A stretch of 64,000 nucleotides of DNA from Octopus bimaculoides (GCF_001194135.2 NC_068981.1:2516402-2580401), one strand, 5' to 3'; shown: positions 1 to 62,116, counted from the first letter of the stretch. Notes: a model not told the origin generated them from the letters alone. Program-made: numbers and translations.

Positions 1-6
1 GATTAC

Positions 7-99
7 CATAATATGGTGGAATCATGTTATTTGAGCCAGTTGCTGGTGCTTGTGGTCCAAAAGGAACTGATGGCTGCATCACTGGTGGAGAATACGGTC
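7..99 (-). CDS. Gene A exon E7, Pro-rich, phase 1-1: (G)PYSPPVMQPSVPFGPQAPATGSNNMIPPYY(G); gene continues beyond window start
   Basis: Acceptor ttcttctaatttctacag|GA CCG TAT and donor TAT TAT G|gtaatc; 93 bp; open in phase 1; homologous to exon 1595-1714. Confidence 0.8.
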
Positions 100-399
100 C
101 TGTAGAAATTAGAAGAATTATTTTGGTAAGTTGTCACTTTTCTTACTGATGGAAGACAAAAACTGTTTCAATTCATCATCATCATCATTTAACGTCCATT
201 GTCCATGCTGGCATGGGTTGGACGGCTTGACTGGGCTGGCATTGGCTGCGACAATGATTTCACTTGCCTCAACATGTCTTCTCAAGCACAGCATATTGCC
301 TGAAGGGTACTTTTAAATGGGCCAGTTATGCAGCACTGGCATTGGCCACGATATAATTTAGGGCTAAGAAGTGGAGAGGATCACAGGAGCATGAGGTGG

Positions 400-1165
400 A
401 GAAGTGGTTCATAGGGCCCCTACAAACCACTCCTCTGCCTCCTGTCCATATGATCCTCTCCCCATCCTCTTGCTCCTATCCTCCCCCTCCTCCCCCTCCA
501 ACTCCTATGATCTTCTCCTCCCCCACTGTCCCTTTGATCCTCTCTTCTCCCTCTTACTCCTATGATCATCTCTTCCTCCTCCTATAATCGTCTCCCTCTC
601 TCATGCTAATATGATCTTCCTCTCCTCCTCCTACAATACTCTCCCCCTCTCCTCCCCTTCATGCTACTATGATCCTCCTCTCCCCCTCCTGCTCCTATAT
701 TCCTCTTCTCCCCCACTCACCCTATGATCCTTTCCTTCTCCCTCTGCCCCTATGTTCCTCTTCTCCCCCACTCTCCCTATCATCCTCTCCTTTTCCTCCT
801 GCATCTATGATCCTCTCCACTCCCTCCTCCCACTTCCTTTTCACTGCTCTTGTTGCATTCATCCCCTGGTCCTCCCGCCCCCATCTTTCTTTTCCTGTAC
901 TGAGCCTCTTTCTACAGTTTTCTCCTCCACTCTCATGACACCTCTCCTCTCTCTTTCTCATCCTCTTCCCACAACTCAGATTCCTCTTCACTCTCACATC
1001 TCTCACTGTATCTGCCCTACTCAACTCGATCCAGTCATCCTTAACCTTCCCTCTCTCACTCTATCTCTCTCTCTCTCTCTCTCTCTCTCTCTAACCATGA
1101 CACTTCTTCCTCTTCCTAATATGATCCTTGTCTCTTCTGCTACTCTCTCCACCACCACCACCATG
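400..1165. repeat. Degenerate pyrimidine-rich tandem repeat with recurring (c/a)tatgatc motif, ending in (CT)n
   Basis: tatgatc-like motif recurs about every 30-110 nt in CT-rich sequence. Confidence 0.7.
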
Positions 1166-1594
1166 GAATAATTATGATTGAAAATCTTATATTGGTTATG
1201 AATGCTTTAAGATGAAATCTTTTGCATCATAAAACCCAAGGTGGTCTTAGGCAGTTTACTATGAAAAAACTTAAGTACAAGTCTTTATCTAGAATTATGA
1301 AAAAACCTTTAAGGATTCAAACTGGTCATATCCAGCCAAAATATTCCACCTGTTTTATGTTCAAACTGGCCAGATCTGGCTGCTCACACCTACCCTACAA
1401 TGTCATTCTAAACAATCACATCATTGAATAAACAATCACACCACCATCATCGTTCAATGCCTATTTTCCAGTGCATAACTGGTACTTATTTAATCGACCC
1501 CGAAAGGATGAAAGGCAAAGTTGACTTCGGCGGAATTTGAAATAAGCTTTATATTAGAGAGAGTAATGTGATAGCAAAATGGTTAAAATATTAC

Positions 1595-1714
1595 CTGGAT
1601 TGTAATACGGTGGAAACACATTATTTTGGTAGGTAGCAGGTGTTGGCATTGAAGGAACCGGCGGATACATCGTTGGTGGAAATGCTTGTGGAAACGTTGA
1701 TGGAGAATATGGTC
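1595..1714 (-). CDS. Gene A exon E6, Pro-rich, phase 1-1: (G)PYSPSTFPQAFPPTMYPPVPSMPTPATYQNNVFPPYYNP(G)
   Basis: Acceptor atcttctaatttccacag|GA CCA TAT and donor AAT CCA G|gtaata; 120 bp; open frame. Confidence 0.85.
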
Positions 1715-1971
1715 CTGTGGAAATTAGAAGATTTATTATTGGTAAATCTAACGATTCTAAGGAAGAGCTTCAAGGGAACACAGCAGGGAAATGAAGAATC
1801 ATTTCTGTGATGTGAAATTTAAGTAGAATTGTAACCAAAATGAGAAGATCTTTCAAATACTGACATGTTAATAGCCATTGATAAAATGGTCAAATCTGAA
1901 ATAACCCAGATGTGACCACCCAATTGAACCCTCGCAGCACAGATTGAATTTTTATTGGTGATGGCTGTGTA

Positions 1972-2345
1972 GGCACAGGTATGGCTGTGTGGTAAAGGGT
2001 TCACTTCACAACCACATGGATTTGGGTTCAGTCCCACTACATAGCAACTTGAAAATGTACCTTCTGCTAGAGCCATGGGCTAACCAAAGCCTTGTGAATG
2101 GATTTGGTAGACGGAAACTGAAAGAAGCCCATCATGTGTGTGCGTGTGCGCCTTTGTGTTTGGGTTTGTCCCTCACCACTGAAGCATTGGTGGTGTGTTT
2201 ACATCCCCATATCTTAACAGTTCAGACAAAGAGACCAATAGAATAAGCATGAGGCTTAAATCGATTTATTCAACTGAAAATTCTTCAAGGTGGTGCTCCA
2301 GCATGGCCACAGTCTAATGATGGAAACAAAAGATGAAAGGTAAAA
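1972..2345 (+). mobile_element. tRNA-head SINE, family A
   Basis: A-box-like TGGCTGTGTGG and B-box-like GGGTTCAGTCCC, then GGATTTGGTAGACGGAAACTGAAAGAAGCC; more than 10 copies in the window. Confidence 0.8.
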
Positions 2346-2789
2346 GATTTAACACACAAATCATATGCAAATCAGTTCTCACAACCTCTTTCTATTGGCC
2401 AGTGAAAATAAAATATGCATAGGCACAGCATGGCCGTGTGGTAAAAAGATTGCTTCCCAACCACATGGCTCCGGATTCAGTCCCACCGCAGTGGGACTGA
2501 ACCCAGATCCATGTGGTTGTGAAGCGAACCTTTTACCACACAGCCATACCTGTGCCTACACAGCCATATTCTTTATATTGTATCGAAATTTCATGCATTC
2601 ATTTGTAAAATTAAGGAAATTATTAAAAATTGAAACCCATCAGTGACTTTTGGGACACCCTGTAAATATATTCACCTCTTATACCTCCTGACTTCAGCTC
2701 TATATTTCTGTCTGATAATGTCGCCTATACAGCTAAGAACTTTATAGGTACAAAATCAATGGTCACTCTCTGACCAGCCATAACAAAAA

Positions 2790-60245: not shown

Positions 60246-60562
60246 TGAATTGACAGAAAAAAGGATACAAATTCAATTTGAATTCAAAATCAAATATATT
60301 CACTTCAAACTTTTAGCAGTTGGATTTTTTTCTCTGAGTTCATTATATCCGAACTTTTAGATATTTGGTATTGACTGTGATATCAAAATGCATATAACAG
60401 CGAACACAATATATCAACATTGTTCTTGCTGCCATGAAGTTACACTTTTTATGAGATAATTACAGTTTATAAATACAATAATTTTTGAAACTTTGAATAA
60501 TCACAAAACTAACTTTTATCAAACAATGCCAGTTCACAGTGATTTTATGTGTGTATATGTCA

Positions 60563-60652
60563 GCTATCTCTGACGAGCGTATATTATATAACTGGTTTGT
60601 TGCCTAACACACCATTATATAATTTCACACGAAACCGATTGGTAAGACCAGC
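60563..60652 (+). ncRNA. Type I hammerhead-ribozyme-like motif with a complete core
   Basis: CTGACGA-G (60570-60577)...C-GAAA (60630-60634), stem III CC-GATT-GG, cleavage triplet GTA (60642-60644); stem II ATTATATAA/TTATATAAT. Confidence 0.55.
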
Positions 60653-61013
60653 CGTGATGGATAATTAACACAATAAAATTCAGACAATATCTATCTATCT
60701 ATCTATCTCTCTCTCTCTCTCTCTNNNNNNNNNNNNNNNNNNNNNNNNNNNNNNNNNNNNNNNNNNNNNNNNNNNNNNNNNNNNNNNNNNNNNNNNNNNN
60801 NNNNNNNNNNNNNNNNNNNNNNNNNNNNNNNNNNNNNNNNATATATATATATATATATATATATATATATATATATATATACAGACAAGGATAATATAAC
60901 ACGAAGATAGAATTTAACAGGCTCAAGTAGTAGATCACAACACTTGTTTCTGCACCACAGCCATTGCAGTCACACACAGCTTTGCTGAGCCACAGTCAAC
61001 TGTTTAATAATTA

Positions 61014-61672
61014 CAAGGTGGCGTCAGACAGCTCCAGGACTTGTTATGTTTAATAAAAAATAACTTCTTTACCAAAGTTTTAACCTCATCTCCTTTGAAA
61101 TAGTCACCTTGCATAGCAATACACTGGTCGCAGTGTTCCTGCCACTTTTAGAATTTGGCCTGGAAGTCCTTTTCCATAAGTGAGTCAAAGTCCGTCTGAG
61201 ATTCACTCTTGATCTCAACAGCAGTGTTAAAACAGTGACCTTTGAAGTGCATTTTCATCTTGAGGAAGAGATCGAAGATTGCATGTGCTAAATCTGACAA
61301 ATAGGGCAAGTGCAGAAGTAACAACATGGTGTTTTTGGAGTAAAGCTGACAAATGAGGAGAGTTCAGCGACAGAGTGCATTGTCATGAAAAATCCAATTC
61401 TTCACGCTCCACAGACCCAGTCGCTTTCACCAGATGTCCTCCTTCAAACGCTTCAAAACCTCACAGTAGAACTCTCAATTGATGGTCTGGCCCTGGAGGG
61501 TGAATTCTTTATGCAAAATACCATGAGCATGCACTTGATTGTTCTGTGGCTAAGCTGTGCCTCCTTCAGTTGTGGAGATGAAGGGCTCTTCCATTGTGAT
61601 GACTGCTCCTCTGTCTCAGGGTTGTACCCATAGACCCAACTCTCATTATTGGTGATGAACCTCGACATGAAG
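61014..61672 (-). mobile_element. mariner transposase pseudogene (3' half) with one TIR-like end
   Basis: ITNNESWVYGYNPETEEQSSQWKSPSSP (cf. TGDESW), decayed HDNA and YSPDLAP regions, GDYFKGD end; TA|caaggtgg terminus. Confidence 0.85.
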
Positions 61673-61677
61673 GATAA

Positions 61678-62052
61678 GCTAGTGTTAGGAACATAAATTG
61701 AGACTCAGGTTTGGTGGAAGATTTTAATTCAGAACTTATGAAAACAAGACACTTGTACTACAGAGCCAGAGACAGTTTCAGCCGGGTTAGTTTCAAAAGG
61801 GTTAAGAATTGTTTCTCTATTATATATTTTAACCCTTTCGTTACTATATTTCTGTTGAGATGCTCTGTGTTTCTTTCAATTATTTTGACTATAACAAAGA
61901 ATTTAGTAAAATAACTTAGTTATCATTAAGCTAGTGTTAGGAACACAAATTGTGACTAAGGTTTGATGGAAGATTTTAATTCAAAACTTATGAAAACAAG
62001 ACATTTGTATTCAGAACCAGAGCCGGTTTCAGCCGGGTTAGTAACAAAAGAT
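61678..62052. mobile_element. piggyBac-like MITE dimer, inverted relative to 43575-43970
   Basis: Partial copy ending AAAAGGG|TTAA at 61801, the same 31-nt spacer, full copy 61833-62052. Confidence 0.8.
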
Positions 62053-62071
62053 TTAAACTTTGAATTCAAAC

Positions 62072-62116
62072 CTGGTGTGGGTCTCCATTCAGGTTCACTT
62101 TTCGGAAAGTATGATC
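62072..62116 (-). CDS. Gene B exon U1, phase 1-1: (G)SYFPKSEPEWRPTP; upstream exons lie beyond the window
   Basis: Very strong acceptor ttttctgtttttgttttacag; 45 bp; ends CCA G|gtttga (weak donor); start resembles gene A exons E6/E7. Confidence 0.6.

Follow-up and report, generated by a model that had tools for sequence, protein, structure and literature searches.

The window, a 64,000-nt stretch of the Octopus bimaculoides genome (CM046601.1, about 2,516,402-2,580,401), contains parts of two genes, A and B, both on the minus strand. They are co-oriented and lie head-to-tail: the stop codon of gene B ends at 45864 and the TATA box of gene A (TATATAAA, read directly) is located at 40367-40360, with 5,497 bp in between. 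This distance and orientation confirmed the layout (same strand, about 5.5 kb) proposed in an earlier sequence-only reading of the same DNA. Gene B is RefSeq LOC106871108, an uncharacterized gene encoding a 223-aa protein (P0001) that is identical to the window DNA over all of its exons, whereas gene A is unannotated. A single gene comprising both was considered and rejected: B ends in a stop codon, with a hexamer resembling a poly(A) signal on the 3' side (from 45779), and A has its own TATA box, 5' exon and ATG. The gaps within the window are the same ones as in the chromosome-scale record, and a 1,840-N scaffold gap lies directly to the right of the window, on the 5' side of gene B. Eight long ORFs, TE-like ones included, showed no Pfam matches.

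Based on the DNA alone, we predicted gene A to be a well-formed gene whose exons have canonical AG/GT splice sites, are preceded by strong polypyrimidine tracts and agree in phase. Exon E1 (40263-40335, 5' end approximate) is non-coding, contains no ATG and ends with the donor CCAAG|gtaaat at 40263; transcription probably starts about 30 nt past the TATA box. Exon E2 (36229-36290) follows the acceptor ttctcttcag|, carries the ATG at 36268, encodes MFSSIFITTLITA and has the phase-1 donor GCT G|gtaag; from its hydrophobic start, the encoded segment looks like a signal peptide. Exons E3 (VTGNLVRTSLMCQDFHCQNAA, 11478-11540), which splices in frame to E2, and E4 (FNSENFRICQQIGCYNENP, 9160-9216) are both phase 1-1 and encode two Cys residues each. 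Spliced together, E2-E4 encode MFSSIFITTLITAVTGNLVRTSLMCQDFHCQNAAFNSENFRICQQIGCYNENP. No paralogous Cys exons of E2-E4 were found with tblastn in the window and the adjoining locus. The E2-E3 intron is 24.7 kb long and includes six gaps (16182-16397, 20242-20251, 21925-22782, 26311-26764, 32884-32893 and 35638-35777), which interrupt no reading frame and could leave room for concealed exons.

The visible part of exon E5 (5820-6235) consists of a minisatellite, 22.5 copies of a 15-nt unit encoding PP[G/V]NF (5895-6232), followed by ...TPSTPYRDSVPPFYDP G|gt. Its 5' end falls in the gap 6236-7029; below this gap the PP[G/V]NF repeat is in frame, and above it the DNA is non-coding and includes a (CA)n run. 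Because the gap cuts E5, the acceptor, the number of repeats and the E4-to-E5 frame are hidden. Exons E6 (GPYSPSTFPQAFPPTMYPPVPSMPTPATYQNNVFPPYYNP G|gt, 1595-1714) and E7 (GPYSPPVMQPSVPFGPQAPATGSNNMIPPYY G|gt, 7-99; absent from the earlier exon list) are phase 1-1 duplicates of each other: blastn aligned 48 nt, including 31 nt of intron, at 89.6% identity (shuffle z ~8). E5, E6 and E7 also end alike (PPFYDP-G, PPYYNP-G and PPYY-G), with gtaat after each. The visible order is thus a signal-peptide-like start, a 4-Cys segment and Pro-rich repeats, and with the phase-1 donor of E7 at base 7 the gene runs past the left edge. This agrees with the earlier proposal that the window holds the 5' half of gene A.

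In gene B, the 223-aa protein is reproduced exactly when exons U2-U7 are spliced. U1 (GSYFPKSEPEWRPTP, 62072-62116, phase 1-1), which lies outside the RefSeq CDS, is in frame with U2 (VYPPVYPVYPLPVMPRYPYPYSYPSFPLSGQPGFPY, 59266-59373, phase 1-1). The RefSeq model uses an internal Met (at 59335, in U2) as the start and includes neither U1 nor the open stretch at the 5' end of U2. U3 (57487-57701) encodes the end of the Pro/Tyr-rich region and a linker, and is followed by a 25-nt mini-exon, U4 (NASSSSAS, 56453-56477). The C-terminal non-repetitive domain begins in U5 (53522-53651) and is completed by U6 (49692-49840) and U7 (45864-45946, TAG stop at 45866-45864). There are 7 N-x-S/T sequons in aa 96-223 of P0001.

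Upstream of U1 there are two U-type exons, both of phase 1-1. To the right of the window, past the 1,840-N gap, a second U1-like exon (L001:2434-2478) has 35 of its 45 nt as in U1; it lies within a separate 173-aa RefSeq model, which reads through the donor of this exon and reaches a stop 6 codons on. Because this exon sits beyond the gap in a separate model, gene B is probably split by the assembly, with LOC106871108 as the 3' half and the 173-aa model as the 5' half. P0001 has sequons without a signal peptide and U1-like exons occur beyond the gap; the 5' part is therefore missing from the window, in agreement with the earlier proposal that only the 3' half of gene B is seen here. In the available 3.5 kb on the upstream side of the 1,840-N gap, tblastn detected no E2-E4-like exon. 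Employing tblastn with P0001, we found no second copy of U5-U7 in the window and the adjoining locus, nor was there one in protein databases. Apart from P0001, a phmmer search of 1.84 billion representatives returned one protein, the bacterial TPR protein P0002, a spurious match; among these representatives gene B thus had no detectable relative to document a family. P0001 was the sole match of gene B peptides in a word-indexed protein search, and LOC106871108 was not mentioned in the literature searched.

The sequence-only reading regarded A and B as possible tandem paralogs of one family, citing the similar starts of U1 (GATCATACTTTCCG, 62116-62103) and E6 (GACCATATTCTCCA, 1714-1701) and the CCA G|gt at the 3' ends of U1, E5 (at 5820) and E6; on this view, a DUF4430-like domain would follow in gene A and signal/Cys exons would precede U1 in gene B. 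Both starts and all three 3' ends, each of phase 1, are present. The two start 14-mers have 10 of 14 bases in common, but this likeness was within chance as a clue to kinship: the exon-start pattern AG|G.(3)TAY(3)CC occurred 5 times in the window versus 2.4 expected, with at least 5 occurrences in 13 of 100 shuffles, and composition-preserving shuffles gave p = 0.29 for E6 versus U1 and p = 0.41 for E7 versus U1. The whole A tail compared with the whole Pro-rich region of B gave a shuffle p of 0.12, and blastn found no nucleotide match between the exons of A and those of B. The top alignment was that of E6 with U2/U3 (PYSPSTFP..PPVPSMPTPATYQNNVFP versus PYSYPSFP..PPMPYVPIPSAYQSHVHP; shuffle p = 0.005-0.009, maximum over A exons). 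When Pro-Pro matches were scored 0, p rose to 0.21, and the alignment spans the U2/U3 exon junction. This alignment depends on proline spacing.

These results speak for an alternative in which A and B are unrelated and resemble each other only as low-complexity secreted Pro/Tyr-rich proteins encoded by phase-1 exons, a design that is widespread among extracellular repeat proteins. The repeat units differ as well (PP[G/V]NF and GPYSP...PPYYNPG in A, G[RS]Y[YF]PKSEPEWRP in B), and the N-terminal Cys module is seen in A only, the C-terminal domain in B only. We nevertheless consider it rather unlikely that the two are unrelated. From general knowledge of tandem clusters, co-oriented neighbours 5.5 kb apart with such similar compositions (31% Pro and 10% Tyr in the A tail, 32% Pro and 16% Tyr in B) would be an improbable coincidence. 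All introns around the Pro-rich exons of both genes are of phase 1, and the phase 1-1 exons comprise E3-E7, U1, U2 and the two upstream U-type exons, same-gene duplicates among these being non-independent observations. The low p value of the E6-U2/U3 alignment also speaks for relatedness. Paralogy is plausible because of adjacency, composition and the uniform phase-1 exons; the earlier family proposal is supported in part. A and B may be old tandem duplicates, with weak evidence in sequence. With middling confidence, we favour two separate, co-oriented, lineage-restricted Pro/Tyr-rich genes, most likely diverged tandem duplicates, of which B is probably split by the gap.

Gene A could instead be non-working: a duplicate in decay, or open segments that happen to line up around a minisatellite coding for proline. 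The annotated record calls no gene over E2, and E5-E7 matched no protein among 5.8 billion sequences in the word-indexed search. Moreover, the E5 minisatellite is open in 2 of 3 frames, so that a long ORF proves little, and the E4-to-E5 junction is inside a gap. Against this, seven exons with canonical AG/GT borders and strong polypyrimidine tracts keep a consistent phase, a TATA box precedes a spliced signal-peptide-like start, E5, E6 and E7 have a terminal motif and donor in common, and no frame-breaking lesions were seen in the visible exons. A non-working gene A therefore appears improbable.

The end of gene B had been called DUF4430-like. As a reading of U5-U7, this would make the domain a highly diverged transcobalamin-like beta domain (DUF4430 fold), and the genes a Pro-rich family ending in a small ligand-binding domain. 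Like the beta domain of transcobalamin, intrinsic factor and haptocorrin and like DUF4430 (PF14478), the gene B domain is C-terminal and about 100 aa long, and it showed a weak collinear profile alignment: hhalign aligned 73 columns with an alignment of four beta domains (human transcobalamin, a second transcobalamin, intrinsic factor and haptocorrin; sequences verified against PDB chains) at P = 0.04, with p = 0.037 over 300 shuffles. The predicted order of secondary structure (strand-strand-helix...strand) would also fit the beta-domain fold. However, the hhalign probability was 1.3%, and neither P0001 nor the isolated domain matched any Pfam family at E <= 10 in hmmscan, PF14478 and PF01122 included. 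Searched with phmmer, the PDB, including the beta domains of 2BB5, 2PMV and 4KKI, gave no matches, and BLASTP against the transcobalamin beta domain gave E = 8.7. Single-sequence AlphaFold2 models were of low confidence (pLDDT 37.8 and 44.3), and there were no homologues for an alignment; the best Foldseek match in the PDB had E = 0.076 and a TM of ~0.2, and cobalamin binders were absent from the matches. None of the matches by Pfam, phmmer, BLASTP or Foldseek was significant. Unlike the cobalamin carriers, gene B has no alpha domain, and no paper linking DUF4430 to cephalopods was found in the literature searched. We regard the transcobalamin-like assignment as improbable. Equally little probability attaches to the fuller version of it, a tandem gene family peculiar to octopus that encodes secreted proteins with a signal/4-Cys head, a fast-evolving Pro/Tyr-rich body and a highly diverged transcobalamin-like (DUF4430-fold) end, in which A would be an unannotated and B a mis-split member.

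If A and B are diverged tandem duplicates, as we favour, what remains of their kinship would be mostly a matter of position, composition and exon phase, with a marginal trace in sequence. Each gene has grown by duplicating symmetrical phase-1 exons of its own, which gave E6/E7 in gene A and the exons of U1 type in gene B; A carries the 15-nt PP[G/V]NF minisatellite in addition. The true 5' part of gene B would lie past the 1,840-N gap, where RefSeq places the separate 173-aa gene. Both products appear to be secreted low-complexity proteins and may function as structural proteins of extracellular matrix, cuticle or adhesive type. The Pro-rich part would form an extended spacer, possibly cross-linked through Tyr, and the C-terminal 120 aa of gene B may form a glycosylated globular end domain.

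Vertebrates have comparable clusters of tandem genes for low-complexity, secreted Pro-rich proteins, such as the salivary PRP, the SCPP and the epidermal SPRR genes. Like A and B, the genes of these clusters are co-oriented neighbours encoding a signal peptide followed by repeats, and they grow by duplication of exons and minisatellites, with gene structure and intron phase as the main traces of kinship. These clusters show no relation to the octopus pair in sequence or Pfam; the introns of the octopus pair are of phase 1, and only two genes are visible. In Pfam, A and B gave no SPRR match, and the sub-threshold match to Extensin_1 (PF02095), with 41.3 bits where the cut-off is 105, reflects composition only. 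In the literature searched on proline-rich proteins, the one relevant mention was a figure legend with SPRR among octopod lineage-specific expansions (PMC7656900). In U3 of gene B there is a Pro/Tyr/Lys-rich motif (...MKPSYPPKAPYPYKP...) similar in style to mussel foot protein 1, a resemblance that is compositional only. The mussel decapeptide is AKPSYPPTYK; mussel foot protein 1 is a tandem array of it, whereas the U3 motif occurs once.

At present, the locus represents an ordinary tandem pair of low-complexity genes in a gap-rich assembly, and it opens no long-standing question. If confirmed, the structures described here would add one unannotated gene to the reference octopus genome and repair one split gene model. 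They would also define a lineage-restricted family of secreted Pro/Tyr-rich proteins without relatives in current databases, whose members would be candidate material or adhesive proteins in the cuticle, the sucker lining or the egg coats of cephalopods.

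A peptide built from the candidate exons of gene B, the minus-strand gene in the right part of the window, matched a single protein, P0001 ('uncharacterized protein LOC106871108 [Octopus bimaculoides]', 223 aa), whose exons are 100% identical to the window. All seven exons lie on the minus strand with AG/GT borders: U1 (62116-62072), U2 (59373-59266), U3 (57701-57487), the 25-nt mini-exon U4 (56477-56453), U5 (53651-53522), U6 (49840-49692) and U7 (45946-45864, stop end at 45864). Gaps lie between U1 and U2 (60725-60840) and between U4 and U5 (55382-55410). Spliced U1-U7 contain P0001 exactly, with the U1-U2 junction in frame, and the RefSeq start of P0001 is an internal Met within U2. 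P0001 has no signal peptide yet carries seven N-x-S/T sequons in residues 96-223 (128 residues; C-terminal part, window 53651-45864, minus strand), which argues that the true start of gene B lies upstream. Within U3, the motif MKPSYPPKAPYPYKP (57610-57570, minus strand) is reminiscent of AKPSYPPTYK, the decapeptide of mussel foot protein 1; the likeness may be purely compositional.

The record encoding P0001 is CM046601.1 (GCA_001194135.2). Window positions 35864-64000 are identical base for base, gaps included, to L001, the locus record that overlaps the right part of the window and extends beyond it; this places the window at about 2,516,402-2,580,401 of CM046601.1. A gap of 1,840 N adjoins the right edge of the window (past base 64000). 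Beyond this gap, a second U1-type exon (L001:2434-2478) encodes GRYYPKSEPEWRPRI (RYYPKSEPEWRPRI) and agrees with U1 at 35 of 45 nt, and a third such exon is present at L001:986-1027 (YKPTFPIPENWLR). Both fall in a separately called 173-aa RefSeq gene, whose CDS runs past the canonical donor of the L001:2434-2478 exon into the intron and stops at L001:2498. By the simplest reading, a single gene was probably cut in two by the assembly at the 1,840-N gap, which supports the earlier inference that no more than the 3' half of gene B falls within the window. The 5' exons of the gene would then lie past the gap, for the most part outside L001. In the 3.5 kb of upstream sequence in L001, U-type exons are present and no E2-E4-like exon was found.

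Gene A, also on the minus strand, occupies the left part of the window. Its TATA box (TATATAAA, 40367-40360) is followed by a non-coding exon E1 (donor CCAAG|gtaaat at 40263), then by E2 (36290-36229; ATG at 36268, encoding MFSSIFITTLITA), E3 (11540-11478) and E4 (9216-9160). Splicing of E2-E4 gives MFSSIFITTLITAVTGNLVRTSLMCQDFHCQNAAFNSENFRICQQIGCYNENP, in which a signal-like start precedes four Cys. E5, which ends at 5820 with ...SVPPFYDP G|gt, consists of a 15-nt minisatellite encoding PP[G/V]NF (5895-6232, minus strand; plus-strand consensus CTGGTGGAAAGTTTC), of which at least 22.5 copies, matching at 86%, are visible; their number is probably polymorphic. The gap at 6236-7029 takes in the 5' end of E5 and hides the E4-to-E5 junction; it is flanked below by in-frame repeat and above by a (CA)n run and non-coding DNA. 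The remaining gaps in gene A, 35638-35777 among them, all lie in the 24.7-kb E2-E3 intron, where they break no frame, yet exons could be hidden there. E6 (1714-1595) ends with ...PPYYNP G|gt and is followed by E7 (99-7, GPYSPPVMQPSVPFGPQAPATGSNNMIPPYY, ending ...PPYY G|gt), an exon that the sequence-only reading did not list; its donor at base 7 shows that gene A extends past the window. E6 and E7 are clearly duplicates of one another: they are 89.6% identical over 48 nt, of which 31 nt belong to the intron upstream, and their peptides align with z ~8. The annotated record calls no gene over E2, and E5-E7 occur in no protein of a 5.8-billion-sequence collection. Gene A is therefore unannotated.

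Genes A and B had been proposed to be tandem paralogues of one Pro-rich family. The features described in that proposal are accurate. The exon-start 14-mers of U1 and E6 are found at 62116-62103 and 1714-1701, each straight after an AG acceptor; U1 (62116-62072), E5 (end 5820) and E6 (1714-1595) all end in CCA G|gt; and the spacing of ~5.5 kb measures 5,497 bp from the stop end of gene B (45864) to the TATA box of gene A (40367-40360). The cross-gene similarity drawn from these features does not rise above chance: the 14-mers match at 10 of 14 positions, 2.4 occurrences of the acceptor-plus-G.Y.P DNA pattern were expected and 5 are seen (a number that 13 of 100 shuffles reach), and E6 or E7 compared with U1 gave p = 0.29-0.41. 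The whole tail of A against the whole Pro-rich region of B gave p = 0.12, and blastn found no exon match between the genes, every cross-hit being a dispersed repeat in introns. One marginal alignment stands apart, that of E6 with the end of U2 and the start of U3 (PYSPSTFP..PPVPSMPTPATYQNNVFP against PYSYPSFP..PPMPYVPIPSAYQSHVHP; p = 0.005-0.009 with the maximum over three A exons taken into account). It spans an exon junction in B, and its significance was lost (p = 0.21) when Pro-Pro matches were scored zero, so that it may mirror proline periodicity only. In favor of a common origin, the two genes are neighboring and co-oriented with similar composition (Pro 31-32%, Tyr 10-16%), and every intron bordering a Pro-rich exon is in phase 1 in A and B alike; in tandem low-complexity clusters it is generally the structure, not the sequence, that preserves kinship. 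We consider the chance that A and B are paralogues roughly even or slightly better, and the interpretation plausible, if unproven.

At the point of this alignment where E6 ends, U3 has the sequence ...CCT TAC G|GTAGTT (57643-57637, minus strand), with a GT in phase 1 that takes the position of the E6 donor. This GT may be the relic of a splice site or due to chance.

The domain encoded by U5-U7 had been labelled DUF4430-like, a fold of the transcobalamin beta-domain type. Pfam returned no family for P0001 or the isolated domain, even at E <= 10; phmmer found no match among PDB sequences and, among 1.84 billion representatives, only P0001 itself and a spurious TPR match. As a reference we aligned the beta domains of human transcobalamin, intrinsic factor and haptocorrin (each sequence 100% identical to PDB chains) with a second transcobalamin. 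BLASTP of the gene B domain against the transcobalamin domain gave E = 8.7, and hhalign against the alignment was collinear over 73 columns (P = 0.04, probability 1.3%), a score reached by 3.7% of 300 shuffles of the octopus domain. Structure models were low in confidence (pLDDT 38 and 44), and Foldseek with them yielded nothing meaningful. The label is no more than a weak lead.

Several repeats were observed. A 223-nt dispersed repeat (87% identity) lies in the A-B intergenic region (41088-41310) and in the E5-E6 intron (2801-3023), both on the minus strand, with a Cys/His-rich ORF tail (...VVNGESL[IV]CNVCS.VCLSRAGLISHQ...); Pfam gave no match for the 211-aa ORF at 41172-41804. A ~186-nt repeat (88-90% identity) lies just downstream of U1 (61872-62056, minus strand), with copies at 43571-43756, 43827-43972 and 61675-61805, in the U1-U2 intron and the intergenic region. 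More than 20 copies of a SINE-like piece of ~60-70 nt, which translates as ...FNV.FPCWHGLDG..., are spread over both strands of the window. Beside the E5 gap, two ORFs (7159-7839, plus strand) contain a Cys-rich stretch (...CGRPNCGTCPHFLEG...NLIYAITC...) similar to the nuclease end of Penelope-like retroelements; Pfam gave no match at E <= 0.01.

Two new results are the most solid. One is gene A, a well-formed gene missing from the annotation that has duplicated exons E6/E7 and a minisatellite exon; the other is the probable assembly-caused split of gene B. The products of both genes look like secreted structural proteins. The repeat body of each would be Pro-rich, extended and possibly cross-linked through Tyr, and would evolve through exon and minisatellite duplication. 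A small 4-Cys segment would form the start of the gene A product, and a glycosylated globular domain the end of the gene B product.
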